Positions 1 through 26,600 of a stretch of 64,000 nucleotides of DNA are shown in pieces; within the stretch, counting starts at the first letter, position 1; each line of letters opens with the position of its first letter. Below the pieces are notes generated by a model. The model made no database searches. It was given only the letters and a program-made list of their open reading frames with translations, and was not told the origin of the DNA. Source of the DNA: Blastocladiella emersonii ATCC 22665 (taxonomy: Eukaryota; Fungi; Blastocladiomycota); contig JANHCV010000005.1 in NCBI GenBank assembly GCA_025594325.1, positions 1,798,001-1,862,000 on the forward strand. The letters run 5' to 3'. A program made the translations under genes and the position numbers.

Positions 1-3000
1 GTCTTCTTCCGCATCACCTTCTGGACCGCGCTCGGCGAGTCGACCGACCCCGAGCGCACCCAGGACCCCGTTCGTGATTTGGGACCGGCGCTCACCGTCC
101 TGTGGACGCGGCTCACGTCCGACCTGCGCCGCGGGCTCGCGGGCAACTGGGTCCCGCTCAAGAGTTCGGCGGTTGCGCTGCAGTGGCCCACGGCCGCCCC
201 GCCGGGTGAACCGACATTCTCGCCCATCCTCCCGTGGCCCGTGCGCGTCCGCGACGAGGCTATGATGGCGACCCGGGACCGCCCGTTCGCCGCATGGTCC
301 ACGTTGTGTTTCGCGTCCGAAGTCCTCCTCCGCACCAACATGCTGCCCGCCGCCTCGGTCGCCGCCATCTCGACGCTGCCCGTTGAGACCATCACCCAGG
401 CCGCGCCCAAGCGGCTGCGCCGGTTGAGTCCCCTCGAAGAACTACTCAACGTACGTTCGCTCTTCTCACTTGATACCATGCGTCTAACCCACAGTGCCCC
501 GAATAGGACGACGGCGTGCAGGCCAAAGACCTCGAGTTCTGCCAGGTCTACGCGGCGCAGCTCGTCTTCTTCGCGTCGATGCGGTACCGCGACGCGTGGT
601 CGGCGCAGGACATGATCGCCATCCTGTCGGCGCTCGGCAAGCAGCTGCAGGCTACGAGCCACGAGGTCTTCTTCTGGGCGTGCGTGGCGCTCGCCGCCGT
701 CGTGCGCCAGACCAACTGCCTCGCCATGCGCGCAGACGACCCCGCCGCCGCCGCCGAGCGCACGCAGTGGGTCCAGATCACGGGCACCGTGGTCCGCCGG
801 CTCGCCTCGCAGGTGTGCGCGCCCGCGTTCCACCTGCTGCTCGCCATGGAGCTCGCGGGGATCACCGCGGCGCCGAGCATCGCCGCCGAGCTCGACGCCA
901 TCGTCCCCGGCCCGCTCGCCCTGTTCTCGACGCAGGGCGCGGTCCCGACCGGCCCGCTGCTCCGGTACGCCGTGCACATGGCGACGACCAACCGCCCGAG
1001 CTGGGCGTCCGTCGACTGGACGCCCGCCGCGCACGCGTGGCTGTTCGCCGACCGCGCGGCCCTCGACGCGGCGGCGACAGACGACCCGGATGCCGTCGGC
1101 GCGTTCCTCGCGGCGATCGGCGGCGACTCGGCTGGCGCGTACGACCTCGCGCGCGACGTCACATTCCCGACCGCGTGTGCGTCTGACGAGGTCATCTTCG
1201 AGCATGAATTTGTCACGTTCCACGCCGTCGGACGCGCGCTGTTCGAGGGCGAGCTGATTGAGCCGCGGCCGTCAAAAAAGGAGGTCGCGTATCGTGCAGC
1301 GTCCACGGCGACGACCAAACCCAACTTCATCCTCGCCGCGACCGTCATGGGCATGCTCGACGCGTTTGCCGGCGTCATGGCCGGCCCCGCCACTTCCGCG
1401 GGGCACGTCCGCGTCGCCGCGCACCTGCTCGACCTAGCACAGCGGTCCGGCGTCGTCCCGCCCGGCGCGCTCGAGTCGCACGTGCTCCTCGACGCCGCCA
1501 AGACCATTGCTCGCGCGCTGTTCGGCGAGACCGCGCCGCTGCCCGCGGGCAGCGACGACGAGGCGCACCGCGCCCTCGCTGTGAAACTGCACCAGCTCGC
1601 GCGCCTCGTCGGCGTCACCGGGTACCTCGCCGAACACTACCTCGGGTTCGGCGCCGTCGTCGCCACCGACCTCGCGCCGATCCGCGCCCCGCCCGTCATG
1701 TTCTCGTCGTCCATGTGCACGTCCATGGTCGACGTCGCGATCCGCGTGCGCGAGGTGATCCTCGCCGGCCGCGAATACGACGGCTCGGCGGCGACGATGA
1801 CACGCTCCGGGTCCGCGCGCGCGCCGGCCGTCCTAACCACGGCGCTGTGGAACGTGGCCGACGACGAGTTCCCCGCGGCCGGCGTGACGGTCGCCGCGCT
1901 CGTGTTCCGCGCCACGCTGGTCCAGGCGTCGCGCAGCGCGTACTTTTCGATCGAGGAATCCGCGCTCGGGCCCGCGCTGCTGCTCGATATCAGCAAGCTG
2001 ATGATGCTCGCGAACCCGGCGCTGTCCGTGTACACGCGGTACGCGACGGAGGACGCGCCGCACCTCGTGAAAGCCGCCAGCGCGGTCCCGCTCCTCGACG
2101 CGGCCTTCTCGCAGCTCCTCCTGCACCAGCGCAACCCCGTGCCGAGCCTCGCGTGCCTCGAGGCCATCACCGTCATCGCGCCCGCGCTCGCCGCGCACCT
2201 CGTCGACCCCGACGGGACGTTCGGCGAGGTCGTCGACTACTGCGTCCGCCGCTGCGCCCGCGTGTTTGTGACGCCGCGGTACAAGATCGCCGCGCTCCGC
2301 CTGTTCCACGCGGCCATCACGATGCCGCAGCTGTTGGGGGATATCGTCGAGCCCGAAAAGGTCCTCAAGGCGGTCCAGGACCTCGCCCGCGACTCGCTCG
2401 CGACCGTCCAGCTCGCTGTGATCGCGGACCTCCCGCGGTTCCTCGACCTCGCGACCACACGGGCCCTCGTGCGCACTTTCGTCGAGACGCTCGCGCCCAA
2501 GGGCATCTACGTCGAGAGACCGATCAAGGTCAAGGCTGAGGTCGGCGAGGAGGTGGACGAGCTCGAGGAGGTGGACGAGCTGGCGACGCAGCAGCAGCAG
2601 GTCAAGCCGCCGTCGCTGCAGCCGCCCGCAGCCGACCAGTCCCCGCAGCCGTTCGAGGCGGACGTGATCGCGCTCCTGTTCCTCGCGCAGCTCGCCATCA
2701 AGTGCGAGTACCTGCGCGTCGAGGCGCTGGCCGACCTCGTCGACCGGCTGCGCCGCGACGCGCTCGCCATGTACGCCGACTCGACCATGGCCATGATCGC
2801 GCGCCACACGGACAAGTCGGTCGCCGACTTCCTCGCCGACTACGTCCCCGCGGTCCTGTACCTGCAGACCGAGCGCGGCGCCGGGATCACGGACCCCGGA
2901 TTCCCCTTTGCGGCGCTCACGCAGTGCGCGACCCGCGAGGAGTACCTCGCCGCGTACACCAACGAGATCGTGTTCGCCCTCCTCATGCACTGCCGGTTTG

Positions 3001-6000
3001 ACGCGTTCGCGCACCTCGCGCAGGAGCTCCGCGCGCCGCCGCTCAAATTCCTCGCGCGCAACTTCACCGCCGTGTTCGCAGCCGCCATCCCGCTCTACTA
3101 CACGGGCGTCGCCGAGGACGCGGTGCGCGCGCAGCAGATCGTCGACTACCTGACCCGGTCGATCCACAAGGAGACGTTCCGCGAGCTGTACATGCACGGG
3201 CTCGACGACATGGCGGCGTACCTCCTGCTGCGCATCGCCGACACCGAGCACGACCCGGGCGCGCTGTTCCAGGGCATCGCCAATATCATGCTGACCAAGG
3301 AGGAGGAGGCGCGCGGGTGCGACCCGATCCCGGAAATGGGCCGCCTGTACGCGACGGCGCTCGGGCTCACGCCCATCAACGGCATCGAAGGCGGACCGTT
3401 CCCCCCATTCACGCGCACTTGTCTCCACGCCAAGGACCTCCCCGTGTACCCGACGGCGCAGTCGCTCAGCGCGCTGCAGCACCTGGCCGCGCAAAAGTGC
3501 GACCCGAACGCGACGGAGCCGCGGGATATCAAGAAGGACGGGCCATGGATGAGTATCATGGGCATCGTCGACGCTGGCATCACGCTTAGCGTGCTGCGCA
3601 ACGCCTTCACCGCGCTCACCGCGTGCTACTCGGTCGTCCACGAGCAGCACCACTGGCTGCACGTCATCCGCGTCCTGCTCTCGCTCATCCCCGACGACGT
3701 GTTCGAGACCCCGCTCGTCTTCGCCACCATCACCGCCGGCGCCCTCGTCGTCGCGCGCCGGTCCACGGTCTCGGCCGACGACGCCCTGCACCTCATCAAC
3801 ACCGCCGCCCAGGTGTTTGACCCCGAACACAGCACCGCCAACGCCGCGATCGTCGCGCAGATCGTGCTCCCGAAGCTCGCCGACGTGGTCGTCGGGCGGC
3901 CCGATCTCGCCGACGTCGCGGCCGGCCTCATCACGAGCCTCCTGCACATGTTCGCCGGCAAGACCGCGCCCGTCGACCTGCTCGTCCCGTTCAAGGACCA
4001 CCCGAAACTCGCGGCGCACGAGCACATGCGCCGCCAGCTGCAGGCCAGCCGGGGCGTCCTCGTCACGCCCGACCTGCTCATCTCGTACCTCGCCGTCGAC
4101 CCGACGCGCGACGCGCTCAAGACCAGCCTCGACCACATGCTCCGCGACATGTGGCTCCACTCGCGCGTGTACCCGGGCGCGCACGCCGCGCACGCGACCG
4201 CGCTGCTCATCGACACGGCGGGGGCGATGCCCGCCGGGCTGTCGGCCGCGGACGTGACGCTCATTGGGAATCAGTTCCCGGCGCTCCTCGTGCACAGCGC
4301 GCGGTCGTCCGCGTCCTCGCTGCCGCTGGGCGATGCGCGCGACCCGAGCCTTGCGAAACTGCAGCCGTGCGCCCGCGCGGTCCGCCGCGCCCTGCACGCG
4401 CTCGCCGGCGACGTGATGCACCTCGTCCGCGAGCTCGATTCGATCAAGGGCCTGCTCGAGCTCGGCCGCATCATGGCCAAGATCCCCGGGTCCGAGGTCG
4501 TGCCCTTCACGGGGTCGAAGCTCATCCAGGAGTTTTTCGCGATTGCCAACGGGCCCGCCAAGGTCACGGCCGAGACCAAGAAGGGCGCCGCCAAGGCGGC
4601 CCTGCCCGCGTCGCTCACGGACGCGGCGCAGTGGAGCTCGGCCGGGTGCGAGTCGCTCGACGTGTGGCTCGCGGCGCGGGTTCCCGCGCTCGCCGCGCAC
4701 CAGCGCGCGCCCTTTTTCCAGTCGGCCACGCGCCTGTTCGCCGCCAGCACGCATCTCGCCGTCAAGGTGTTCCCGTACCTCGTCGAGTCGTTTGTCGCGT
4801 CGGGCACCGACCAGTGCGCGGCCACCGCCGCCGCGCTCTCGGCCGTGTTCCGCAACGCGGACAACGAGCGCGTCGACGTCCTGCACCTCTGCATCGACGC
4901 CGTCAACCACGTGCGCGCCGAGTTCCAGGCGACCCAGGACCCGACGCTCGACCTCGACATCGAGCCGCTCCCCGCCGCGCACGCCGCGCGCCGGTGCGGC
5001 CGCACGTTCGACGCCCTGTACTTTGCCGAGCGCGCGCTGTCCGCGCTGCACGCCGAGGGCGCCGCGGACCCCGCCGTCAACGCGCTGCTCGTCGACCTGC
5101 ACAAGGATCTCGAGGATCCCGACGGGTTCGCGGGCGTCAACCGCGGCACCGGGTTCACGGACCTCCTCGCCGCGTACGAGCAGGCCGGCGACTGGGGCAT
5201 GGTCCTCGACGCGTGCGAGACCGAGATGGCCGTCGCCCCGCGCGGCGCGCCGCGCACCGACCTTTACCGCCGCTGCATGGCCGCCATGGATAAGCTCGGG
5301 TTCCACCGCCTCCTCGCCGACGTGCACGCCTCGTCCTCGTCCTCGTCCTCGGGTGCGCAGACGCAGTCGCTCACGGGCGTCGCTGAGGACCAGTACCACG
5401 CGCTGTGGCGCGACCAGCGGTGGGACCTTGCTGCCGCGCCCGACGGCAAGCTCGGGTTCCACGGGCACGTGTTCGAGGTCGGCAAGGCGCTCGGCGCCGG
5501 CCGCATCGACGCCGCCGCGCAGTGGGTGCAGTCCGGCACGCTCGCGGTCGCCTCGAGTCTCGCGGCCCGCGCGGGCGCCGCGGCGCGCCTCCTCGCGACC
5601 GCGCCCAAGCAGGACGTCCTGTTCCAGGCGCACGTCATGGCCAAGCTGCCCGCCGTCGTCCAGCACATCGCGCACCTCGCTCACCAGCCGCCGCTGCAGC
5701 AGCCCGCGGACGGCGAGCAGCACCAGCTGCCGTCGGCCGACGTGATCTGGCCCGTCGACCTCGCCACGATGCAGGACCACCTCGCCTTTGACAAACTCGA
5801 CATGCTGCTCGGGATCCGCGCGACCGTGTTCACTGCCGCGCGGCTGCCCGCGTCCATCACGCTGCCGGCGCTGCTCGACCACGCGACCGTGGCGCGCGGC
5901 GCGCGCCAGTTCCACGTGGCGGCCACGGCGCTCGCGCACGCGCGGTCGCTTGCAACGGCTGACGCGGACCGGTGGACGGTCGCGACGAACACGGCGAAAC

Positions 6001-8316
6001 TGCACTGGCTGCGCGGCAACGAGCGCGCGGCGCTCGGGATCCTGGACGCGGTGGTCGCCGAGACGTCGCCCGGCCCGCCGCCGCACGTCGCGGCGAAGCT
6101 GCTCAAGCGCGCGGGCAAGTGGCGCGCCGCGACGAAATCGCTCCCCGCGGACGTGCTGCTGCGCGACTACTTCGAGCGCGCGGCCGAGCTCGACCAGTCC
6201 AACGCCGGGATCCGGTACACGCTGGCGCGGTTCGCGCACGACCAGTTCCTCGCGATGCAGGCGTCGGAGCTCGTGCAGCGGCACCGGGTGCAGCGGCAGG
6301 CCAAGCAGCGCGACCTCGAGCTGGTCAAGCTGTCGCTGACGGCGATGGGCGAGCCGCGCACCACGAACCAGGTCACCGAGTGGAAGCGGCTCGAGATCAC
6401 GCGCAAGCGGCTGCGGATCCAGATCGCGCACGACGACGAGGTGATCGGGCAGCACGCGCAGCTCGAGTCGCAGTGCGTCCGCCGCGCCATCGAGAACTAC
6501 CTCGCGGCACTCGCGCTCGGCGATAACGCCAAGCACGACATGGCCGTGTACGCGGCGTGCTCGCTGTGGCTCGCGCACCCGACCGACGCGAGTGTCACGG
6601 AGGCGTTCGAAAAGGCGGAGAAGGACGTGCCCGCGCGCAAGTTCCTGGCCATGGTCACGCAGCTCACGGCGCGGCTCGGGTCCCGCAGCGACCTGGTCGC
6701 GTTCCAGCGCACGCTCATCACGCTCGTCTACCGCATGCTCGAGTCCCACCCGCACCACGTCATGTACCCGCTCATCGCGCTGTCTAACGGGAACGTGATC
6801 GGGTACGAGGGCAGGGGGTTCAAGTACGAGGCCAAGCACGACGACTTCACCGCGGTGCGCATGAGTACCGTCAGGGAAATCATGACGTCGTTCCAGACCA
6901 AGGCGCCCGAGCTCATTGCGCAGTACTACCGCCTCGCCACCGCGTACATCCAGATCTCGTACCGCAAGCACCAGGGCAGCTCGACCGGCACGTTCAAGCT
7001 CCCGCAGTCGACGCTGATCCACGAGATCAAGGACCTGACCGAGGTGCCCGTCACCACGGTCGCGGTGCCGTCGACCAAGCCCGGGATCGGCGTCCCCGAC
7101 GGCGTGCCGTTCGTCCGCGGGTTCGTGCCCGAGTACAAGGTGGTGGGCGGGGTCAACCTGCCCAAGGTGCTCAAGTGCGTCGGCAACGACGGGCGCGAGT
7201 ACGTGCAGCTGGTCAAGGGCAACGACGACCTGCGGCAGGACGCAACGCTGATGCAGGTGTTTGGCGTGGTCGACCGGCTGCTCGCGAAACACGCGCCGAC
7301 GCGGCGCCGGCTGCTCGGCGTCCGCACTTACCGCGTGGTCCCGCTCGCGCCCAAGGCCGGCCTTCTCGAGTGGGTCGCGCACACGTGCCCGCTCGGCAAC
7401 ATCCTGACCGACCTCCACGCGCAGCACACGGACGGCCGGCGTGACCAGTGGACCGCCATCAACTGCCGCCAGGCCATGCAGCGCGCGCAGGACCAGCCCG
7501 GCGCGACGGCGAAAACCAAGGCCGACTTTTTCACCACCCAGATCCTGCCGCGGTTCCGGCCCGTGTTCCACAAGTGGTTCGAGGCCCAGCCATCGGCCGA
7601 GGCGTGGTACCGCAAGCGGCTCGCGTTTGCGCGGTCGTGCGCCGCGTCGTCGATTGCCGGGTACGTGGTCGGGCTCGGCGACCGCCACTCGCAGAATATC
7701 CTCGTTGACGAGGCTAGCGGCGAGGTGATCCACATTGACCTGGTACGTGCTCTCATTCCTCGCGTGACCACGCAATCACTAACCCGTTCACGTCTAGGGC
7801 ATCGCCTTCGACGGCGGCACGTACCTCCCAGTGCCGGAACTCGTGCCGTTCCGGCTGACGCAGGAGCTTCGGGACGGGCTGGGCCCCGCGGGCGGCGGCG
7901 GGCGCGGCGAGGACGGCGTGTTCCGCCGTTGCTGCGAGGAGACGCTGGCGGTGCTGCAGGCCGAGGCGCACGTCATCATGACAATCCTCGAGGTGTTCCG
8001 GCACGACCCGCTGCACTCGTGGGCCGCCGATGCGGCGCGACTCGCCAAGGCGCAGCGCGAACACGGCGCGCCCGCCGCGGGCGAGGACAGCGACGGGGAC
8101 GAGGCCGTGGCGGTGGGCGCGCCGAGTGCAAGCGAGGGCGGCAGCGAGGAGGCGGACAAGTCGAACCGCGAGGCGGAGCGCGCGCTGCTGGGCGTCCGCC
8201 GCCGGCTCGCGGCGCAGGGCGTCAGCGTCGCGTGCCACGTCAACGAGCTCATCATGCAGGCGACGAATCCCGAGAACCTCGCGGGCATGTTTGTCGGGTG
8301 GCAGCCGTGGCTCTGA
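1..8316 (+). CDS. TEL1: ATM/Tel1 PIKK-family Ser/Thr kinase, 5'-incomplete; exons <1-450, 507-7742, 7798-8316
   Basis: Kinase motifs YVQLVKGNDDLRQD, GLGDRHSQNIL and (spliced) [25 protein letters not shown]; FATC end NLAGMFVGWQPWL*. Introns 451-506 (GTACGT..CTAAC..TAG) and 7743-7797 (GTACGT..CTAAC..TAG) join the frames correctly. Confidence 0.95.
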
Positions 8317-8418
8317 ACCGGTGTGGACGGATCAGTTTTGAAAATATATATCACGCAAGATGGATTGGTTGGATGTATTTCTATGTGCTAAATGGTGTGC
8401 ATGCGAGGGAGGGAAGGA

Positions 8419-9694
8419 TCAGACGCCGAGCCGCGTGTACGACGCGGCAGCAGGCGCCGTCATCATGGCCGAGGTCGCGGCGGTGACACGGCCACGGCGG
8501 CCGACGTTGCTGCGCCACCACGCGCCGAGCCCGCGGAGCGACCACCGCGGCGGCGCCACGTCGCTGAGCATCGACGACGCGGCCGCAATATCCACCACGA
8601 CCGACGATGCGGCGCCCGCGCCCGCGGGCACCGCGGACGGCCGCGCAAAGTGCCAGTCGTGAATGCCGACGCATAGCGGGCTGCCGAAGCTGGCCGACAG
8701 CTCGGCCTCGGACATGGCGGACGAGATGACGGAGGCCGAGGTCGGCATGCGCGAGCGCGGGCCCGTGCGCGAGATGAGCGGCGGGAGCGGGTAGTGCTGG
8801 TGGTTGTGGTGGAAGGTCTGGTACATCGCGCCGGTGCCGCCGGCGGAGGAGGGCGGCGGCGGGTGCAGAAAGTCGGACATGGAGCGGCGCTTTGGGCGCT
8901 GAACGAGCGGCGGCGCGTCTGGGATGTCGGCGGCGGCGGCGGCAGCGTGCGCGGGCGAGGAGAAGAGGTACGGCGTGGATGCAGTGCGGGCGGCGCGGTT
9001 CGAGAAGGCGGCTATGGGCGAGGAAGAGTCAGTCGGCGCCTCAACGAGAAGGGTGGCGAAAAAGCGCGTACAGTTCATGCCGAACGCGGCGTGTGCGGGC
9101 GCCGTCGGATGGCGAGACCGCGGGACCGCCGACGGGAGCGCGGGGAGGCACGGCACTGGCGCGGGCCGCGGCGGCCGTGTACCGGAGACCTTGCGCGAGG
9201 CAAAGGCGCGCAGCATTTCCTGGTCGGGGAGCTGGACGAGAGCGACGTCCCACTCGCCGACGCTGCGGTGGAGGCCCTTCCAGCACACCTCGCCAGTCAA
9301 AAACTCGGCGAGGCCGCGGTGCTCGACGTTGCGGCGGACGAGGACCGAGAGCAGGTTGTAGGCGGCGAACCAGGCGACGAGCAGCAGGCCGATCACGGTG
9401 CGGTAGTTGGTGACGGACTGGAACAGCGCGACGACCGCGGCGCCCGCCGACGGCACGCCGAACAGCGGGGCCGAGGCGGCGGCCACGACTGTCAGCAGCA
9501 CGAGGACCGTGGGCGCCACGAGCGCGGTGATCTTGAGGACGAGGACCGCGTCGTCGCCGTGGTCTGCTACGCCGCCGTAAAATCAGCGGTCTGATCAAGA
9601 TGCGGGTCGCGTGGGGAGGGCACGCACCCGAGTGGAAGTCGATGGTGCCGAGGGCAATGTTGCTGAGCCGCGTGAGCTCGTAGTAGACGTGCAT
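8419..9694 (-). CDS. Hypothetical membrane protein with two or more hydrophobic segments and a Ser/Pro-rich C-terminus; at least one intron (donor at 9627)
   Basis: ATG at 9694 (MHVYYELTRL...). A GTGCGT donor, GCTGAT branch and TAG acceptor splice into the 8419-9519 ORF. Hydrophobic stretches TVLVLLTVVAAA and TVIGLLLVAWFAAYNLL. A further intron near 9015-9180 is possible. No family recognised. Confidence 0.6.
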
Positions 9695-15277: not shown

Positions 15278-16597
15278 TCACAGCGGCTGCATGACGCGGT
15301 TGCCCGACTTGACGGGGTCGGGCATGCGGAGGTGGTAGTCGCCGTTCTGCGTAATGTAGCGGACCCACGGCAGCGCCTGGTACCCGGACTTTTCGACGAT
15401 CTTGAGGTAGCGGACCTGGATCCCCGACACCGTGAAGTAGGGGATCTCGAACTTGACCGAGATGGGCGGCCGCTTGTCGAGGTCCTCGTTCTTGACCGTG
15501 GGCAGGCCGAAATGCGCGCGCATGAGGAACTCCTTGCCGCCCTGGAACTGCTTGATCTTCCACACGACGGCCGACTTCTCGGGCACGTACTGGGCGCTGC
15601 CCGCCGACACCTTGAACTTGGGCGAGTCGGCGTCCTCGGGCACGGGGACCACGATCTCGACGTTGTTGGCCGTCGACCGCCGCTTGAACTGGGCCTTGGC
15701 GCGGATCATGTACTCGATGCGCGTGCCCGAGTAGTTCTCGACGGCCGCCTCGCACAGGATCAGCGGCTTGAGCTGCGTGCCCTGGCGGTAGCTCATGAGC
15801 TCGAAATCGCCGTCGGGCGGGATGAACGAGATGGTGCGGTCGTTCTCGAACCGCGACAGCCGCACGCACTGGTGGAACTTGACGTCGTCCATCTCGATGG
15901 CCTTGCCGCGCGGCGTGCGCCCGCTCGCGTCGAACATGACCTTGTCGTTGAGGCCCAGCCGCAGCTCGGGCATCCCCGACAGGTAGCACCGCATCTTGAT
16001 GGCGCCCAGCACCTCGGACCGCAGCACGTTGCCGTTGGGCGCGACCAGCATGTTGACGCTCTCGATCACGTCCAGGAACACCTCGTTCTTGCGGTACTTA
16101 ATGCCCTCGGGCCGCCACGACACGGCGTTGGTGACCGCCATGGGCGGGCGCGTGCCGATATCGAGCTTGTGCGACTCCTGGGTAATGTACTCGCGCAGGA
16201 TCTTGGACTCGGTGGTCTGCGGGTACCCAAAGTCCATCATCTCGTCAAGCAGCTCGTAGATGATGACAAAGTTGTCGCGGATCGACTCCTCCTCCACCTC
16301 CTTGAAGTACTCGGTGAAGACCTCGGTCAGGCGCTGCAGGAACAGGAACACGGTGGCGGCGTTCGAGTTCTTGCGCGTCAGGGCGACCAGGTACAGGTTG
16401 TTGTACTTCATGTACAGGTAGTTGACGCCCGAGTCCGCGTCCGACACGACGGGCGCCTGCTCGCCGCCCTCCTCCTCGGTCTCGGTCACCAGCGGCAGGA
16501 ACTTCTCGATGGCGTTCATCGGGATGTCGCCCCGGAAGTTGCGCGCGATCAGCACCTTGCCCTTGACGTCGAGGATGAACACGGCCGACGCGACCAT
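15278..16597 (-). CDS. APM1: AP-1 adaptor complex mu subunit (mu1), intronless
   Basis: MVASAVFILDVKGKVLIARNFRGDI, ESIRDNFVIIYELLDEMMDFGYPQTTESKILREYI, VSWRPEGIKYRKNEVFLDVIESVN, SGYQALPWVRYITQNGDY. Confidence 0.97.
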   Translation of the reverse strand: MVASAVFILDVKGKVLIARNFRGDIPMNAIEKFLPLVTETEEEGGEQAPVVSDADSGVNYLYMKYNNLYLVALTRKNSNAATVFLFLQRLTEVFTEYFKEVEEESIRDNFVIIYELLDEMMDFGYPQTTESKILREYITQESHKLDIGTRPPMAVTNAVSWRPEGIKYRKNEVFLDVIESVNMLVAPNGNVLRSEVLGAIKMRCYLSGMPELRLGLNDKVMFDASGRTPRGKAIEMDDVKFHQCVRLSRFENDRTISFIPPDGDFELMSYRQGTQLKPLILCEAAVENYSGTRIEYMIRAKAQFKRRSTANNVEIVVPVPEDADSPKFKVSAGSAQYVPEKSAVVWKIKQFQGGKEFLMRAHFGLPTVKNEDLDKRPPISVKFEIPYFTVSGIQVRYLKIVEKSGYQALPWVRYITQNGDYHLRMPDPVKSGNRVMQPL

Positions 16598-17083
16598 GGT
16601 GGATCAGTAGGTTGATGCGTTGCAATGAGTGGGTTTGTCGGAGAGCAGCCGATCGCGACCGGGAAGGGTAGAGGGGAGGAGGGCGCGGCCGAGAACAGAG
16701 CGACGCGTCGGCCGCGCTGGGAGAAAAGGTGCTCGTGTGGCGCCGCGACTTTCCTCGCCGCCTCACGCGCGCGTCACCTGATGCCGCTCGCGTCTCTCGT
16801 TTGCGGGCCTTGCCGATCGCTCTCGCTTTTCTCTCTCCGTGCAACGTATCATGATGGAGCCCATGAAATCACCTCTTGCAACCTTACCCGTCGAGCTCGC
16901 CGTCCGCGTCTTGCAGTTTACGGCACCGCGGCCCGCCCTCGCTCCCGCCTCGTCGATCTTTGCTGCGAGGGCCCGCGACCGATGTACCACCACCTCTTGG
17001 GCCTTCGCCTTGGCCGCCCGCTATCTCGCAGCTTCTGATGGTCCCGACAAGTTCGACCTCTGCTCGTTCCTTCCCGGTAAATA

Positions 17084-17349
17084 GTTTATTCCGAGGGATT
17101 TATGGGACCTGCCGGCTAAAAAAGCTGAGCTGCCGAGGGGATTTTTCCGCACCTGCCGACACTCCGTGCGGACGCGCCGAGGGAAGGAGCGGATCGGCCG
17201 AGACGCGGGGCGGGCTGGCCGTGGCCCCGTGCGGACCCGCCGAGGCTTCGTGCGGATCCACCGAGGAACTCGCTTCGCACGCTCTATCTCCCTCAGTTTG
17301 CGCCCTCCTCACCCGTAACTGCACACGCACGCTCGCACCACTCCCTGCA
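17084..17349 (+). repeat. Left terminal inverted repeat (266 bp)
   Basis: Reverse complement of 23337-23602 by eye; the ORF track shows the same peptide from both copies on opposite strands. Confidence 0.95.
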
Positions 17350-17371
17350 TCGTGCCCTGCCCAACATTGCG

Positions 17372-20300
17372 ATGACGGCACCGCCCTCGTCGTCTCCCGC
17401 CCTTCACGGCGGTGGCGGTGGCGCCAGGCGCGCGACGCAAGCTGCCGTTCGGACCACCGCCAACCGCGGCGGTCGCCCGCCCAAGTTTCCCGACCCTTCT
17501 ATCGCCGCGGCGCGTGTTCCCGAACCCCGTGCCGACGACGTGTCGTCTGACTTTGAGGAGGAGGAGGAGGAGAAAATGTGGCGGGCCATGAAGACGACGG
17601 CCTTGACGAGATCGACCGCCTCCTCGCCGCTACCGACGCCAACACGGCCGTCGGCCGACTATCTGATCATCTCGGCCAGATGCTCCTCATGGGCGGCGAC
17701 ATCATGAAGGCGCACATGGACCGGTCTGTCGCAAGCGCCGTCGCCCCTCGGCCGCCCCAGCGCGAGGACATGACCCGCTCGTTCAAGGCTGTCGCCTTGA
17801 GGGACACGACCAAGTCTAACAACCCAACGTAAGCGATATACCACGCCTGCACATCGTGTCGGCCGATCCATGGGAAACTCACGTCCGCTTGCATCGCTCG
17901 TAGCCGCACGTTCCGCGTGCCCGTGTCCGACATCCCGCACTTCTTCAACACCATGCACCAGGACTTCACGTTCGACAGCACCGACTTCTCGCCCGACGTC
18001 GTTATCACGCAGACGTCCAACATCCCGCACCCAGATCCCCGCATCTCGATCCCGTACATCTCCTTCGCGGTCCCCTACCTGCCCGACAACGACAATCTCG
18101 TCTACCGCGCCCGCTACGGTTGCCTCAGTCGCCCGTCCTGCCCGATCTCCGATGACGACGCCAAGGCAGTCGCCGAGTGGCATGCGCTACCCGTCGGCAA
18201 GCGTGGCAACGCCCCGCGGCGTACATCCCCCGTGACGATCTCCATCTACATCTACGCCCGCGACCTCAAGACCGCGCTCGTCCGCTTCTACGACGACCAC
18301 ACCGACGTCATCCCGCTCAAACAGCTCAAGATCTCCCCGCTCGTCGAGAAGTTCATGAACCGCCGCAAGCTCGACTTCAGCCTCACCCGACGCGCCTTGA
18401 TCAATGGTACGATCCGCCAACGCGTCCCCGCTGTCCGCGTCGCGAGTCTAACGAACCGTCCGCCGCCTCTTGTAGAGGTCCTGTTCTTCTGCAAGGAGCG
18501 CAACATCCCCGAGTACCGCCGCCCAAGCGAGAAGCAGATCGGCGACTGCCATAGCCATGCGCACTCGAACAAGTTCAAGCTCATGCTCGACGTCGTGGAC
18601 AAGATCGTCGCCGACAACACGGCCAAGGTCATCCACTACACCCGTGCGCCATTCGCGGTCGCCTTCATGACCGACAATGCCGCGCTCTGGTGGCTCGCCT
18701 ACCATCGCGGCGCGCCGACGGGAATCGACAGCTCGCACCGGCACAAGAGCTCGGGCTCGATCCCCATGACGATCCTCACGATCTTCAACCCGCAAGGGTG
18801 CGCGCCCTCCCTCTCTCTCAACGCGCCGCGCGACAGCGTTGTACTGACCCAGCCGTTGTCAAATTGTGTAGCCGCGGGCTCCCCGTTGCCGTCCTCGTCT
18901 CATCGGACATCAAGACGGAAACGCTCGTCGCGTTCCTCAAGGCGTTCCGCGAGCGTGTCGTGGATGTCCTCGTCGACCTGGTTCGCGGTAACCGTCGCTC
19001 GCTCTCCTCGAGCACGAGTCCTGGGTCGAGTACTTCCAGCGCTACTGGTTCTCGCCAACGTGGCTGCGTACGTTGTTTGCATGGGTAACACCACATGTGC
19101 AAGGCAACTGACCATGTGGCTCCTGTGTAGCGTACATCGTCGACGCAACGGGCTCGACTGAGATCGCGCCTGCACTCAGCAACACCAACAACATCACCGA
19201 GGCCATGTTTCGCACGTTTGATCGTGTTGTGCTAAAGTACGCTGCCCGCGCCGTACAGCACGCGCAACTTGGGACTAATGCAGCTCCGCGCCGCGCGAAT
19301 CTAGTAACATCGCAGGCAACCGCCTCGATCTTCTCCTTCACCGAATCCTGGAGCTCATGTTCCCGTACTACGAGCGGATGCTGCGTGAGCGAGGCGATGA
19401 CGACCCGCGCTTCACCATGGACCAGGCCGCCCATCGTGCGCACGGCTTCGATCTTTGGCAGTTCGGCCTCGTTGCGCGCGTCACCGACGTGGAAACGGTG
19501 CGCAAGCTCGCCCGCGTGGGCGGCGATCCGTCGCCGTCCATCTTCCTCGTTGTCAGTTTTGAGGAGTCGGGTCGCAAGCACTACGTCTACCTCGAGAAGC
19601 ATCGGTGCACCTGCCGCGCTTCGCGTGACCACAACCAGGTGTGCGCCCACCTCATCGCCGCGCACCTCATGTTCAACCACGGTCGCCGGCAGTGCGAGCC
19701 CAAGTCGCACAGCAAGAAGCGGGCGTCGGTGCCCGAGGTCGTCTCGCTGCTCGACGCCGACATCCCGCTCCCTGCGTGGATGCTCGACCTCCGCCAAGCG
19801 ACCACCGAGTTCCTCGCCGATCTGGACGAGCTCGATCCAGTGCAGGTTGCCGATTTCGACAACCTAGAGTGGGGCAACCCGCTTGCGTGCAAACCCAACC
19901 GCCGGCGCCGCGAACGCTCAACCGTTGCACCCGCTCTGTCCCGCTCGACCGACGGCGACAGCGGCACGGGTTCTGTCGTGTCGGCTCGCGTCGCCGCGGC
20001 GTCGTCCTCGCGCGAGGCGCGCAGCAGCACCTGCGACGAGAACGACATGGACCTCGACGAGCGGTTTGACGCCGACCGGTCGTGCGTGGGCGACGGGTCC
20101 AACGGCGATGACGACCGCATGCTCGTTGACGGCGAGAGATCTGGCTTTGAGTCCGACTCAAGCGCCGCCGCCGCGCCTGGCACTCGCGACGACGACGGCG
20201 GGCTCGACTCGGTTCCGTGGATGTTTGGCGACGCAGCAGCCGACGAGGGCGCCGCGAAACTGTTTGCACTCGCCGAGGCGGCGGCCAGCGGCGAAGCCCC

Positions 20301-22224
20301 CCAACGCGACGCGGCGGACGACCTTCGGCCATCGCGCGGGCGGCCCGCGCGCGTCATGACGATGCAGGAATGGCGGCCCACTGCTGCCAACACTACGAAG
20401 CGCGCGCGTAGTGTCAACGCCTCGACCAGCGAGCAAGCCGCGCCAAAGCGCCGCCGGCCAGCTGCTGCGCCCGCGTCACCTCCCGCGTCACCTCCCGCGT
20501 CACCTCCCACGCCGCTTCCGGCGTCGCCCCCTGCGCCATCCCCGAGCATGCCGCGGCCGCCGCGACCCTCGCGCGCGCGTGCTGATGCCGCCCCGCTCCA
20601 GCCGCCCTCATCGTCGCCGTTCGCGTCGCGGCTCGTGTCGCCGAAGATCGCGGTTCCGCCGCGCAGTCGCGATGCCGCTGCAGTCCGCCCGCCGCCAGCC
20701 GCAAGTGCGCGTCCAATCGAGCGCGGCGCTCCGGCCCCGCAGCTCGTGCAGGTTGGCCAAGGGCTCGGCAAGCACTCGCATGCGGCCACGCTCAAGACGA
20801 TGCCCGCGCTCGCCGCCAGCAACGCAGCTGCGTGGGCCCGCAGCGCATCAAACAACGCGACGCAGCCGCGGCCTGCTCAGCGCGCCATCCTCCCCGTCAA
20901 CGTCCCACACGGCCCGCCCAACACGGGCTCCATCGACGTCTCGCCCAACTTCAGCTACGACCTGTTCTACGCGTGCCCGTTTGACGCGCTCTTCACGGCG
21001 CTCCTGTGGGTCATGGTTGACACTCGGGTAATGGACGTGTTTGCGCCGTCTGAAAGCACGTCGTGGGACATGGCGCGCTTCCCCGAGGTGCCCGCGCCGC
21101 GCGACACGATTCGCGACGTGTTTCGCCTTCTGCGGGCAGGCGAGTACGACCGCGCCCGCTTCCTGTACGCGCACGTCTTCGCGAATAGGACGGGCGGACG
21201 CCTGCCGGGTGGGTTTGACGTGCACAGCAAAACCGACGTGTCTGTCTCGTGGGTCGGCGATGTCGCCGATCACGTCTTCGAGATGTACAAGGTCGACATG
21301 GCGCAGCTGGACAGCGCGCGCGCGACCAACACGCTGCACCGCCCGCTCCCCGCGCTCGAATACCACCCGGAAGACGAGCGCGCGTGCGCGCACTGTCTGA
21401 CCCCAACAACTTCAAGGCGATTTGGGACGCGCTCGTTCAAGAACAGACGCGACTTCCCTTCCTCCTCGGCGTCCATCATCACGCCGTACACCCCCAACAT
21501 CGAGCAGGCGGTCAAGAGCTGCCTCGATCCGTGCGACGCGTGTCCGTGCCGCGCGTCATCGCGCCACGAGTCCTTCGAGGACAAGAAATTGGTCGCGAAG
21601 AAGGACATGAAAAAGTTCGCCACCTCGATTGATCGCCTTCACCTCGCTTGCATCGCTTGACGTGATACTGACTGATTCGCTCTTGTTGCGTCTAGATGCA
21701 TCTGTCCTCGCTTCATTCGCGACAACCTGATCGTCCCGTCGGCGCCGCACTTTCTCGCTGTTTCTCCAATGCGCGACCATACTGGACCGCTGTCTGACCC
21801 TGTCCCCGCCATGATCACGACCAATGGGTACGCGCCAACTGCTCTCTGTCTCCTCCTACTCAACTCACGTGTGAACGCCCACTCACGTAGACTCGCGCTT
21901 CGCCTCTGCGCCGTCGTGTACTATCACCCAAGCGAGCGGACCGCGCACTATACGAGCGCCTTCGTCTACGGCGGCTCGTGGTGGTACTTTGACGACATGG
22001 GCGGCGGCAGCGCATCCATCTTTGAGCCCTACAAGTCGAGCGCACGCAAGTCCGTGCCTGTTACTGTAGAGAAGAAGGCTACCTACGGGCTGCCCAATCC
22101 GTCGGTGCCCGCCGTCCGCCTTTCCGTCCCTCGCGACCAAGTCCCGATGTTGCGCAACGCAGCGGGGACAGCGTCCAACATGATGAAGTCCATCTCGCTC
22201 GCCGTGTACCGGGTCCTGGGCTAG
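17372..22224 (+). CDS. Multi-exon MULE gene: DDE transposase (internally deleted) + SWIM zinc finger + low-complexity linker + USP/C19-like protease
   Basis: First-Asp motif GIDSSHRHK..PMTILTIFNPQG.GLPVAVLVS (D at 18727). YFQRYW..W..NTNNITE (E at 19199). NRLDLLLHRI. SWIM CTC..CAH (19606-19650). YACPFDALFTAL (C 20974), AHYTS (H 21946), WWYFDD (D 21991). Introns include 17829-17903, 21615-21695 and 21828-21890; others near 18410, 18800, 19070 and 19240 are less exactly mapped. Start codon uncertain. Confidence 0.8.
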
Positions 22225-23336
22225 TCCAAAGTTTTTTGTTCCTCATATATTTTCGTTTGTCTCTAAATCCGCTGGTGGATCAGTCGCGCAACTCGTTGAT
22301 GGTGAAGGAGACGCGTTGATCAATCATGTGACGTCGCCTCGTGAGACGTGAGACATGATACTCGGGACAATACAGCTGTTTCTCTTACCGCCCATAGCGA
22401 CGGCAATTCTGTATCACCGGGAGCAGTCTGCTCCTCGTCTCGTGGCGAAACAATCGACGCGATCGAGGCGCGAGCCCAAAGGTCCGCGGCGGTTCCTGAC
22501 GCAGCGGACCACACCACCCTCCATCGTGAAGTAACCGGTAATGCTGAGGTTGAGCGCGGCAATGCGACCGACCTAGTGCAACGGATAGTGGTACAGAAGG
22601 TCAGTAGCGAAGGCGAGGAAGCGGAACGACGTCGTCTTGCGATGTCCGCGAAGTGGATCGGCCGCTGCGCGTCTCGGGTCGCTCAACGCGCACTAGAAAC
22701 AATAGCGCATGGTCTCCGTTGAGAGGAGCTTCGCGCGCGCGACCAGATGGCGACCTGAGAGCAGGATCAAGTGTTCAGCGTGATCCCTGTAGCGATCTTG
22801 GACGCGGCGACGAGAGCCGTGTCGATTTTACTGCGCATCAGCGCATGCTGCCACCACGGCAGCTGCACGGCGACGATCTAGCCCATGTTCCAGTCGGCAG
22901 TGCCCGCGGCGGCCGCGTCGCGCTTTCTAGCGCGTTGCGTCCGTTGGACGTGAAGAGTTGGAACGATCGTCGCCCGCGCGGTCAGCGTGGCGCAAGCGCT
23001 TGGTGGACGCGGCAACGACAGCTACTCACCCACTCGAGATGATCCGAAACCCGGCGGCCTGCACTAGTACGGCAGGACTCGCGCGGCTCCGCGCGGCGAG
23101 CGGCAGAGTGTGGTCGCGGCAGAGTGTGGTCGCGGCATGTGGAAACCGAGCAACGGCGGCAGCCCAGATCGACGACTCACATCGGTAGATTGTGCTCGTC
23201 AATCAAGACATGGTGACACGGGTGGCCCGCGCGACAAGAGAGCGGACGAGAGCGGATCGACATGGCGGGGGGCTGAGCTTTCCAAGGTTCGCGCACGGCG
23301 AGTCGTATTTTCGTGGAACTGTTCATATATTATCAT

Positions 23337-23602
23337 TGCAGGGAGTGGTGCGAGCGTGCGTGTGCAGTTACGGGTGAGGAGGGCGCAAACTGAGGGAGAT
23401 AGAGCGTGCGAAGCGAGTTCCTCGGTGGATCCGCACGAAGCCTCGGCGGGTCCGCACGGGGCCACGGCCAGCCCGCCCCGCGTCTCGGCCGATCCGCTCC
23501 TTCCCTCGGCGCGTCCGCACGGAGTGTCGGCAGGTGCGGAAAAATCCCCTCGGCAGCTCAGCTTTTTTAGCCGGCAGGTCCCATAAATCCCTCGGAATAA
23601 AC
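23337..23602 (-). repeat. Right terminal inverted repeat (266 bp)
   Basis: Inverted copy of 17084-17349. Confidence 0.95.
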
Positions 23603-26600
23603 AAAACACGCCGTTCCTTCCCTCCGCGAGCAGAATCGAGCCGGCCCACGAGCTCATCGTTACGCACCTGCTTCTTCGCCGTATCTCCGCAACAGACGCG
23701 TCCCAAGTCGAAGAAAACCTCGCAAATTACCTCCTTATACCGACACGGCCCATCTGGAGCCGTGAGCTTGTCACGCTTGTCCAGCTGCTCTGCCAGGCCG
23801 CGGCGCTCAACTGCAAACCTCTCTTGATGCGCCTTCTAGACCGTACCTCAACGGTCCGGCCCCAGCTCTTCAGCGCGTGTCTCCACATCGCCTACTGGCT
23901 TGTTCTCGCCAACAGGGCGTTCATTGGCGATCGCTTCAAGTGGCACCACACGGACGACGTGGACCAGGACCCACTTTCGCTCGCCGAGTTCCTCGCCTTC
24001 ATCGCTTGCTGGTGCGCGAACACACGGCTCCTAGCTCTTCTACTTGGCGATCGCGATGTCCAGACGAGCAAGGCGCGCGTTGCCGCCATCCTGTGCGGCG
24101 GGCACTCAGCGCCGGTCATCACGACCACCCTCCGCACTGCTGCACTTGAGAATCCCGAGGTTGTCGCCCCGGTCGTGGACGTGCTCGCACTTGCGCTCTC
24201 GAATGCCGCTGGCATGTTGGCTTTGGTTCGCGCGCGGCACATGGACTGTGCCGTCGCGCTTGGCCCACGGTGCTTCCGCCCGCTTATCAATTGACTGCCC
24301 GATCATACCAAACAAGCAATCGCCTCGGAGTCGCCGCTGCTTGACTGGGCAGTCGGTTTCCAGTAGCTTGACGACCCTCATTATCAACCGCGTCTCGGTC
24401 CCGGATCTCGAGCTCCCCGAGTCGTGCAGCGTCATGAACCGCGGGCTGTGGGCGTTTACGCGCGCGACTGCCGTGGCGCGGCGCGATAAGGAGACAATTA
24501 TCCCTTTGCGCGACCGTTCACTGGAGCAGTGGAGGCAGCTCGTCCTTGATGGCTTGTACTGCGACTCTTAGAGGGCCCTGTGTGCGACCAGCTGGCTAAA
24601 GTATTGAGTTTGTAGGCTTTTGTGCGAGCATCCCCAAACATGGACCAGGACTGCGACTTGAACTGCGACCGAGCAGCGATGACCTACGGCGGTACACGTC
24701 CGCGCAGCTTCTACTTCTTTTTGCGTTGGGAATCGACACCATGTCCGCGGTTGACTTGGCCGACCTGATTCAAGCTTCCATCGACTTGCATCCAAGATTC
24801 GTCACGGACAGCTTGCTCGACGGAAATCTTGCTCTGGATCCCGTGCACCTCGTTGCTCTGCTCGCCCCGCGCTACGACAAGTTCGAGCGCCTTGCTCGCC
24901 ACTTCGTTGGGGCTCCGATCCTCGCTTGCTTGGTCATGGCCGCGCTCAGAGATCCCGGGACTTGCAGTCGCGCGCTCGACACGATTCGGCTGTCGCTTCA
25001 GAACACGGTCATGAGGATCATGATCGACTCGGTGCTGTGGCCGGCTCCCTGTCCGTTTTGGAAAACCGGCATACCTGATCTCAACATCTGCAAGGGTTGC
25101 CCCCTCGCCGGGCAGCGGCTATTCTGTGACACGCTTAAACTGGTCTTTGAGTCGTTACCCGATGCGCTCTTTGCCTACCTGCGGGAGCCGGACGAGCACC
25201 TGTGGTCCTGCCTCAGCAGGGACTTCAATGAAGATTACATGAAGTTTCCACTGTGCCGGGCTGGCAGCTGCGACCACATGTTTTATGGGGGCTCGCCTGG
25301 CGGTCGCCCATGCGCGTTTCGGAGCGGACCCATCGCTCGCGGCCGATAGCTTCTTCAGACAACGCAGCTGCCATAGACGACGTCGACCGCGCGCGGGACT
25401 TGAGACACCTCGTCCATTTCCAACGATGGGAGTCCAGTTCTTCGCTCGACCAAATCTTGCACGACGTGTGCCGCGTTGCGCCGCGACTCGTCGACACACG
25501 TGAGTTTATGGAGGCGGTTCCGGGATCGCGCACCGGGACCTGGTGAGCGAGCGCGTGTTGACGCCTGCGTTCAATCAATACACGTCGTGCGTTGGCGAGA
25601 TCGTTACGGAACACGTTCTCGATGGCTGTGGCCAACTTGAACTGAGCGGTTGAGGGATCAGGGAATGCAAACGCGCGCCAGCGGTGAGTGTCTCCAGCAA
25701 TTGTGAGGCAAATAAACACGTCTCGCACCACGACGCGTGACCCGCGACGCGTCCCCTCTTCACCGCCACCTGTGAAAGACCGAGGCGCCCACTTCGCGCA
25801 ACTTTCGGCACGCGGGAGCATCAATCTTGGCGCTCCGAGGGATCCGGCGGAACAGCACCTGTGACGTGGCACGCATGCACGACGACGCGGTGGGCGACAA
25901 CCGCGTGTTCGGGCAACCTTCCTGGCGCTCTCGATGCAGAGTTTTGCTGGTTGCACAGAGTCTGGCCACAGCGCCGCGGTCTTGGCGCTCGCCGTGCTCA
26001 TCGTGTGTCACGCTCCTCCCACCGCGCGGCCCACGCCGTCTCCCTCGGCCTCGGTGCGCGCAAACGGTCCCGCCGTGCATTGCTGACAAGGGATGGCGCA
26101 TGAGCGGTGGGAGAGCCAAGCCTGATACGTCTGGCCGCAATGCCCGCGGAGCATTGTTGCTCGCGGGACGCGTCGCGCGCCGCGCCACCGCCACGCTCAG
26201 CCACCGCCACGCTCCCTCGCGTGCCCGGACCTATAAAACCGGGCAAGATCCCCGCTCACCCTCTGGCTCTCCGAACACGAACGCATCGCCCCCCTCCCTT
26301 GACCCACCACCACGCGCTCTCGCCTCGCCCGCCGCCTCGCCCGCCGTGTAGGCACCATGGAACCATGTATCGACACACCCCGAGATCCTCTCGAGCACTC
26401 AAGTACACGTCCCGTCCGGGCGCTCACGGCCGGGCCATTGTGGTGAGTGCCGCGGTAGTCGCCGATGCTGTCCACTCTCGTCCAACACGATCACCCGTGG
26501 GGCAAATGCCTATACGGACGGTGACGCCGGATCGTAGCGAAGTGGACGGTAGTCTGGGTCGTCGCTGCCGTCGTCGTCCCCGTGTTCGTCGCGCCCGTGG

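Follow-up and report, generated by a model that had tools for sequence, protein, structure and literature searches.

Within a stretch of 64,000 nucleotides of the GC-rich genome of Blastocladiella emersonii ATCC 22665 (GenBank assembly GCA_025594325.1, contig JANHCV010000005.1, positions 1,798,001 to 1,862,000 of the forward strand; hereafter the window, from whose first letter all coordinates are counted) lies a Mutator-like element (MULE) whose one spliced gene would encode, in succession, a MULE transposase, a SWIM zinc finger, a long disordered linker and a papain-like domain of ~400 amino acids (aa) of the type found in the ubiquitin-specific proteases (USPs; MEROPS C19). This tail domain, fused in one frame behind the SWIM finger and the linker, displays a Cys, two CxxC pairs, a His and an Asp in the order in which they occur in USPs, and is interrupted by neither a stop codon nor a frameshift. 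On the combined evidence, the tail probably adopts a USP-type fold; that it represents a fused, USP-type and originally catalytic module of the MULE transposase is favored with somewhat less assurance. The similarity to USPs is one of motifs and, at this level, the USP assignment is partly supported and appears to be the best available explanation of the domain. What is shown is the architecture of the element, its reading frame and the in-frame fusion; the fold of the tail, its catalysis and its function are inferred.

One predicted gene from transposase to tail

Four long open stretches, namely 17557-17829, 17833-19158, 19279-21657 and 21676-22221, share one frame of the forward strand (codon starts at 1 mod 3), and the breaks between them coincide with short segments bearing splice signals of the fungal type. 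Six putative introns can thus be delineated (GC3 being the G+C content of third codon positions):

17829-17903, forward strand: putative intron of 75 nt, with AAACTCAC where a branch-like site is expected
18798-18871, forward strand: putative intron of 74 nt
19068-19130, forward strand: putative intron of 63 nt
19237-19304, forward strand: putative intron of 68 nt
21615-21695, forward strand: putative intron of 81 nt (GTTCGC...TACTGAC...TAG), with two in-frame stops inside; GC3 0.56
21828-21890, forward strand: putative intron of 63 nt (GTACGC...CTCAC...TAG); GC3 0.52

The donors of these segments are GTAAGC, GTGCGC, GTACGT, GTACGC, GTTCGC and GTACGC; all six end in TAG and five have a branch-like CTGAC, CTCAC or CTAAT near the 3′ end. 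The two that fall within the tail domain had already been proposed by an earlier, sequence-only reading of this DNA and the sequence agrees with the proposal, both having GT..AG ends, a length divisible by three and a branch-like site (CTGAC and CTCAC), with a frame that, upon their removal, reaches the TAG at 22222-22224. Removal of introns 17829-17903 and 18798-18871 leaves 17680 to ~18990 open over 387 aa, while with the putative introns removed 19004-22224 becomes a single open frame of 981 aa, ending at the same TAG. The resulting gene has the following parts:

17680..18990, forward strand: transposase N-terminal exons (17680?-17828, 17904-18797 and 18872-~18990), with the first-Asp region; GC3 0.87
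18990..19014, forward strand: internal deletion junction, with a change of frame; the expected second catalytic Asp region is missing
19004..19605, forward strand: post-deletion transposase exons (19004-19067, 19131-19236 and 19305 onward); spliced open reading frame (ORF) open
19606..19650, forward strand: SWIM zinc-finger motif CTC...CAH, matching the pattern CxCx(n)CxH
19801..20889, forward strand: low-complexity Ala/Pro/Ser/Arg linker of ~360 aa; G+C of first, second and third codon positions 0.73/0.65/0.78, weak codon periodicity
20890..21614, forward strand: USP-like domain, N half, with the putative catalytic Cys at 20974-20976, CAHC at 21385-21396 and CDAC at 21532-21543; GC3 0.85
21696..21827, forward strand: middle exon, with CIC at 21697 and IVPSAPHFLAVSPMR; GC3 0.67
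21891..22224, forward strand: USP-like domain, C half, with His at 21946-21948, Asp at 21991-21993 and the stop codon TAG at 22222-22224; GC3 0.83

The residues singled out by the sequence-only reading (Cys 20974, CAHC 21385, CDAC 21532, CIC 21697, His 21946 and Asp 21991) lie exactly at the positions that it had assigned to them.

The composition of third codon positions provides a guide to which of these segments are translated. GC3 amounts to 0.87 in the first transposase exon, to 0.85 in both the SWIM region and the N half of the protease-like domain, to 0.83 in its C half and to 0.78 in the linker, and falls to 0.60 after the TAG at 22222-22224; the fact that it is high in the exons and low in both introns of the domain and past the stop indicates that the frame is coding and that the introns are not. 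Furthermore, the frame that leads from the SWIM finger into the tail runs for 793 codons without a stop (19279-21657), and beyond the linker the coding GC3 resumes in that very frame. The linker also holds a 12-nt tandem repeat at 20458-20517, coding for (PASP)n.

The frame from the ATG at 19357 had been described as unbroken, and indeed the ORF 19357-21660 is open over 767 aa. This ATG is, however, not the start of a gene; the frame is open upstream from 19279 and is joined through the introns 19237-19304 and 19068-19130 to the transposase exons, so that the ATG corresponds to an internal Met (...ILELMFPYYE...). An independent SWIM-protease gene beginning at 19357 was therefore rejected as unsupported. 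As to the transposase itself, the damage to its DDE core reported from the sequence alone was confirmed, since the frame changes at ~18990-19004 and one of the contigs of this sample departs from the window sequence just before 19015; the switch of frame, along with the fact that the diverging letters of this contig read in frame into the downstream sequence, indicates that the window copy has lost an internal piece.

At the 5′ side of the gene, 17372-17707 is occupied by an ATG-started ORF of 111 aa with a poly-Glu end, whose frame differs from that of the next exon (17557-17829) and which is separated from it by no obvious intron; a frameshift may have occurred in the GAG/AAAA run near 17556-17577. 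At the 3′ side, the ~1.1 kb that separate the stop codon from the right terminal inverted repeat (22225-23336) are devoid of coding periodicity (GC3 0.60) and may represent a 3′ untranslated region or the remnant of a second gene.

Resemblance of the tail domain to ubiquitin-specific proteases

To serve as a USP reference, at least 120 giant-virus loci were fetched from IMG/VR contigs with a degenerate DNA pattern of the Cys box and their ORFs were extracted; 27 of these, all below 45% identity to one another across long matches, were kept and aligned as a profile, designated A2, all 27 members of which match the Pfam family UCH (PF00443), with a best E of 4e-65. Compact USPs of ~330 aa are, as this sampling revealed, very common in giant-virus metagenome bins (at least 120 loci), with the Cys box located 8-20 residues from the N-terminus.

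When A2 was compared with the C half of the tail by hhalign, the sole alignment obtained was that of the His box (P 0.0035, probability 9%), in which ALRLCAVVYYHPSERTAHYTSAFVY--GGSWWYFDDM is paired with the consensus Y.L.gv.nH.Gs..GGHY.A.ckn....Wy.fND. The H, Y, W and two Asp of the element fall on columns H287, Y288, W300, N304 and D305 of the profile. H, Y, W and D occupy invariant columns, and the proposed His and Asp coincide with the positions at which the USPs have their catalytic His and Asp/Asn; the column of Asp 21991 is the one that we take to be the position of the third triad residue in USP7. The same box emerged from an hmmsearch with a hidden Markov model built from A2, run on the real domain and on 2000 shuffled versions of it; the former scored 2.5 bits, the best shuffle 1.6 bits and none of the 2000 reached the real score. 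The resemblance of the His box to that of USPs thus appears to be modestly above chance, and the support that it lends to USP membership is weak but specific.

At low stringency, the hhalign alignment of the spliced domain (P 0.009) reaches the His box after passing collinearly through CAHC, CDAC and IVPSAPHFLAV, the last being the counterpart of the P.VLII.LKRF block. The CAHC at 21385 and the CDAC at 21532 come to lie on the two CxxC columns of A2 that form the zinc ribbon and the middle exon lines up with the P.VLII.LKRF block; global-mode hhalign was uninformative. The domain would be arranged as in a USP, with a nucleophilic Cys from which a helix sets out, followed by a CxxC...CxxC zinc ribbon and by a His box contributing both His and Asp. 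The low-confidence AlphaFold models contain a helix that starts right after the Cys and a His box predicted as strand-turn-strand.

Partly independent support for the USP type is given by the features of a protein language model. The best cluster of the C half (score 0.93, 175 shared features, recognition 2436) has UCH members and its structural neighbors are nearly all UCH; 72 of the 100 neighbors of this half belong to UCH sets. For the N half, the corresponding number is 60 out of 100, with low scores, the UCH sets being dominant among the named ones.

Relatives of the domain are exceedingly rare. When 1.84 billion cluster representatives were searched exhaustively by phmmer with the N half, a single true relative emerged, P0002, two further hits (P0001 and P0003) being repeat artefacts. 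P0002, a singleton cluster, is a 100-aa fragment encoded on a metagenome contig of 947 bp (L001) and is 35% identical to the N half, the best-conserved block being the Cys region (SY.L.YAC.FDA.FTAL); the ORFs of the window have no entry in the same protein collection. On L001, the domain is preceded by more than 110 open low-complexity codons without a Met, in keeping with a module at the C-terminus of a larger polypeptide. Word-based protein searches with the N half and with the C half gave no matches, and scans for relatives in metagenomes (two) and in viruses (one) found nothing; on the basis of these searches, the domain can be regarded as nearly an orphan.

Ends of the element and its assignment to Mutator

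The element is bounded by the following features:

17076..23611, forward strand: Mutator-like element of ~6.5 kb; left and right end differ in their outermost 8-9 nt
17065..17075: left target-site duplication, CGTTCCTTCC(C), 10-11 bp, with an identical 11-mer at 23612-23622
23612..23622: right target-site duplication, the same 11-mer as at 17065-17075
17084..17349, forward strand: left terminal inverted repeat (TIR) of 266 nt, 100% complementary to 23337-23602, with internal 21-nt sub-repeats
23337..23602, reverse strand: right TIR, the perfect complement of the left one

The 11-mer CGTTCCTTCCC is found on both sides of the element, beyond the 8-9 unlike bases that lie outside each TIR arm. 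Within the TIRs, at 17155-17265 and 23421-23552, a sub-repeat of 21 nt (GCCGAG.../CTCGGC..., families D1 and D2) occurs in four copies, which could be transposase-binding sites. No second copy of the element occurs within the 64-kb window.

The structural hallmarks of Mutator are present: long perfect TIRs, a target-site duplication of 10-11 bp and a SWIM motif. As to the protein, Pfam finds SWIM (PF04434) in the finger region with an E of 0.1, below the family cut-off, and no match to the MULE core (PF10551 or PF00872) in the N-terminal piece of the transposase, for which a word-based protein search likewise gave no homologues. The language-model neighbors of this 442-aa piece are the MULE, FAR1 and ZSWIM families (best score 0.91, 144 shared features), a result to be regarded as a lead rather than as proof. 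Three regions, namely that of the first Asp (GIDSSH...), the E..E..Y/F..FL region and the TNNITEAMF region of the catalytic Glu, bear by eye what we take to be a likeness to MULE transposases. Overall, the Mutator reading of the element is sound; it had been advanced from the sequence alone and finds confirmation in the 266-bp TIRs, the target-site duplication, the SWIM motif, the MULE neighbors and the deletion derivatives described below.

Other members of the family in the same sample

DNA contigs assembled from three runs of one sample were compared with positions 17000-22999 of the window. One of them agrees with the window from 17075 on, while the 255 letters that precede this position differ; such a foreign flank indicates that the family has inserted at a second site as well, and it fixes the left end of the element. 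Three other joints correspond to internal deletions: 19657/21652, present in all three runs, which skips 19658-21651 (1994 nt) and yields a derivative lacking the linker and most of the N half of the protease-like domain; 17437/22969, which skips 17438-22968 (5531 nt); and 18612/22308, which skips 18613-22307 (3695 nt). These joints indicate that several internal-deletion derivatives coexist in the sample, as expected for a recently active cut-and-paste family.

A contig of one run (X3) carries, before 19015, 216 letters unlike those of the window, the last 30 of which read in frame into ...EEF-ESWVEYF, and six substitutions clustered at 19057-19087, just after this point. It probably derives from a fuller member of the family that has kept the part of the DDE core deleted in the window copy. 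At five positions (18056, 18061, 18227, 19888 and 21350, corresponding to Y>C, S>P, S>C, C>R and P>L) every read contig differs from the window, all five differences being non-synonymous. The element of the window is best explained as a young, recently inserted, non-autonomous Mutator-like copy whose DDE core is incomplete owing to an internal deletion.

Evidence against a USP-type module and alternative explanations

A number of results weigh against the interpretation of the tail as a USP-type module. Neither half of the domain is matched, at E up to 10, by UCH (PF00443), UCH_1 (PF13423) or any other Pfam family, and phmmer finds no USP for it among the PDB sequences. In the N half, hhalign of A2 finds no match to the USP Cys box, N.GNTC[YF].N; although the window of Cys-29 ranks first of 373 by a position-specific score from which the pattern-biased columns were subtracted, 105 of 300 shuffled sequences score equally, and the position five residues before the Cys, which in the USP profile is that of the invariant oxyanion Asn, is occupied by Asp in the element and by Gln in P0002. 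AlphaFold2, applied to the two halves separately, gave unusable models (mean predicted local distance difference test scores, pLDDT, of 32.3 and 36.3). The statistical support comes down to one short motif, with P about 0.003. A 422-aa ORF is present on the strand opposite the linker and, the linker being very GC-rich, open frames across it constitute weak evidence. Finally, five non-synonymous differences out of five, small as these numbers are, are consistent with a relaxed constraint between copies or with a decaying copy. The USP/C19 identity put forward by the sequence-only reading is partly supported by the His box (P 0.0035; 0 of 2000 shuffles) and by the UCH language-model neighbors, but receives no backing from the Cys box (105 of 300 shuffles) or from Pfam.

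Of the alternatives, the one that best withstands the data, unlikely as it is, admits the USP-type fold but regards the tail as a pseudo-enzyme or a decaying remnant that would at most bind ubiquitin or serve as a scaffold, or do nothing at all in the window copy. It is favored by the lack of a canonical Cys box of the GNTCYMN type, in which the invariant Asn before the Cys is replaced, by the silence of Pfam on the tail, by the DDE core of the window copy, which is already broken, and by the five fixed differences from the contigs, all of them non-synonymous. It is, however, at variance with the finding that Cys, His and Asp are all at the expected positions, that ~400 codons have accumulated neither stop nor frameshift and retain a GC3 of 0.83-0.85, and that it is precisely the block around the Cys that is the most conserved part in the comparison with the distant P0002.

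A more radical alternative, rather improbable, denies the relationship with USPs altogether and views the tail as an unrelated, lineage-specific C-terminal domain rich in Cys and His, possibly zinc- or DNA-binding, whose His-box likeness would be coincidental. That a single short motif (P about 0.003) should carry the USP assignment, that the N half is without profile similarity to USPs and that no fold could be obtained from the AlphaFold2 models all speak in its favor; moreover, the best PDB matches of the WYFD motif are CDR3 (complementarity-determining region 3) segments of antibodies, which illustrates how easily this motif can be matched by chance. Against mere coincidence, separate language-model searches with the two halves point to UCH families, the motifs succeed one another collinearly with those of USPs (Cys, CxxC, CxxC, hydrophobic strand, His/Asp), and four residues of the His box fall on invariant columns.

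The weakest alternative, namely that the protease-like region is a fragment of a host gene captured in the manner of Pack-MULEs or that the element has two genes, of which this region is one, draws on the GC-rich linker, which makes the evidence that both parts form one protein weak, but is highly improbable in view of the 793 codons without a stop in the same frame, in which the coding GC3 resumes, of the fact that 1.8 billion representatives include no cellular USP, nor any other protein, similar to the region, and of the long Met-less open frame found upstream of the domain also in the homologue L001.

Host locus and neighboring genes

The insertion interrupts a host ORF (16839-17075 joined to 23623 onward) which displays a LATLPVELAVRVLQF motif, LP.EL-like. 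The sequence-only reading had placed the element inside a putative cluster of F-box (ubiquitin ligase adaptor) genes, which is not borne out by Pfam, no F-box being found in this ORF or in the next one. Excision of the element in silico leaves the host frame open for ~57 more codons of low complexity, and the idea that removal of the element restores a host gene was not adopted, the frame being open only over these ~57 codons of low-complexity sequence. Two genes of the window lie to the left of the element:

507-8483: PIKK kinase gene, open over 2659 codons, with PI3/PI4-kinase and FATC domains at its end
15281-16603, reverse strand: gene of an adaptor-complex (AP) mu subunit

Both are ordinary core genes, with a GC3 of 0.91-0.98.

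Relation to known transposon-borne proteases

Proteases acting on ubiquitin or ubiquitin-like modifiers are known in several transposons. Plants, hydra and lancelet have Mutator elements with a Ulp1 domain, Ginger1 carries OTU or Ulp1 and Helitrons carry OTU; furthermore, in the Trichomonas vaginalis protein XP_001314237.1 a transposase of the IS4/IS5 type (pfam01609) is joined to Peptidase C19 (PMC2836005). MULE transposases with a C-terminal protease of the OTU superfamily have been described in Medicago truncatula (PMC1702500) and, in the case of the VTD deubiquitinases of Helentrons, the activity has been demonstrated biochemically and proposed to protect transposition proteins from degradation (PMC9741609). 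A deubiquitinase-type protease on a transposon is therefore not new in kind (PMC2836005, PMC1702500, PMC9741609), and the general idea of a USP on a transposase has already been published (PMC2836005). On the other hand, full-text literature searches found no report of a MULE-USP fusion, and in a survey of Mutator diversity the words protease, peptidase and ubiquitin are all absent (PMC6446971). The question whether the architecture had been catalogued, which the sequence-only reading had left to a search, thus receives a divided answer: the combination of MULE and USP was not found, whereas C19 on a transposase of the IS4/IS5 type is on record.

The MULEs with Ulp1 (C48), which include the Kaonashi/KI-MULEs of Arabidopsis, CUMULE of melon and the MuDR elements of hydra and lancelet, likewise carry a papain-like ubiquitin/ubiquitin-like protease in a transposase-associated ORF (PMC2836005). 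Their catalytic residues follow the order His-Asp-Cys, whereas in the element described here the order is Cys...His...Asp, with a zinc ribbon in between and a His box that aligns with C19, and Pfam finds no match to Peptidase_C48 in the tail. In the OTU MULEs of Medicago, the module is likewise C-terminal to the transposase core and the SWIM region (PMC1702500), but belongs to the OTU class and to a plant host, whereas that of the present element is USP-like and resides in a fungus-like host. The Trichomonas protein also combines a DDE transposase with a C19/USP domain, but its transposase is of another superfamily and its C19 domain, unlike that of the element, is seen by standard profiles. 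The OTU and VTD enzymes of Helitrons and Helentrons are likewise transposon-encoded deubiquitinases (PMC9741609), but these are rolling-circle elements and the Asp-x-His active site is unrelated to the USP arrangement. Finally, the compact giant-virus USPs (~330 aa) are collinear with the domain of the element as regards the His box, the CxxC pairs of the zinc ribbon and the order of the motifs; they possess, however, a canonical Cys box and a QND..EF box and are recognized by Pfam UCH with E of 1e-47 to 1e-65, whereas the domain of the element, which is ~70 aa longer and contains insertions, obtains no Pfam score.

Possible role and significance

By analogy with the Ulp1, OTU and VTD modules, an intact member of the family might use the tail as a deubiquitinase or as a protease of a ubiquitin-like modifier; its targets in cis would be the transposase itself, or chromatin or repair factors in the vicinity, and transposition would be favored. 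The suggestions of the sequence-only reading that the protease could shield the transposase or oppose host silencing are speculative, and neither these nor a functional tie to F-box genes found any backing in the analysis. In the strongest version of this scenario, which we put forward tentatively and consider somewhat less probable than its negation, an active Mutator family of a blastoclad-type fungus would carry a functional, extremely divergent USP-class deubiquitinase, the founder of a new, nearly orphan C19 branch whose spread depends entirely on the transposon. The value of the finding is limited in that the principle has been published and the class of the enzyme is unproven. If the assignment is correct, the element would show to what extent the sequence of a USP can drift, to the point of becoming invisible to Pfam and of having one homologue among 1.8 billion representatives.

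Several superfamilies of transposons have independently acquired ubiquitin/SUMO proteases, Ulp1 having been recruited by MULEs and Ginger, OTU and VTD by Helitrons. The element of B. emersonii, being apparently of recent mobility, would lend itself to excision assays carried out with and without the catalytic Cys. If the USP reading is true, a USP on a MULE would represent a further independent recruitment of a deubiquitinase, alongside those of Ulp1, OTU and VTD, and would strengthen the case that the removal of ubiquitin-type marks generally aids DNA transposition.

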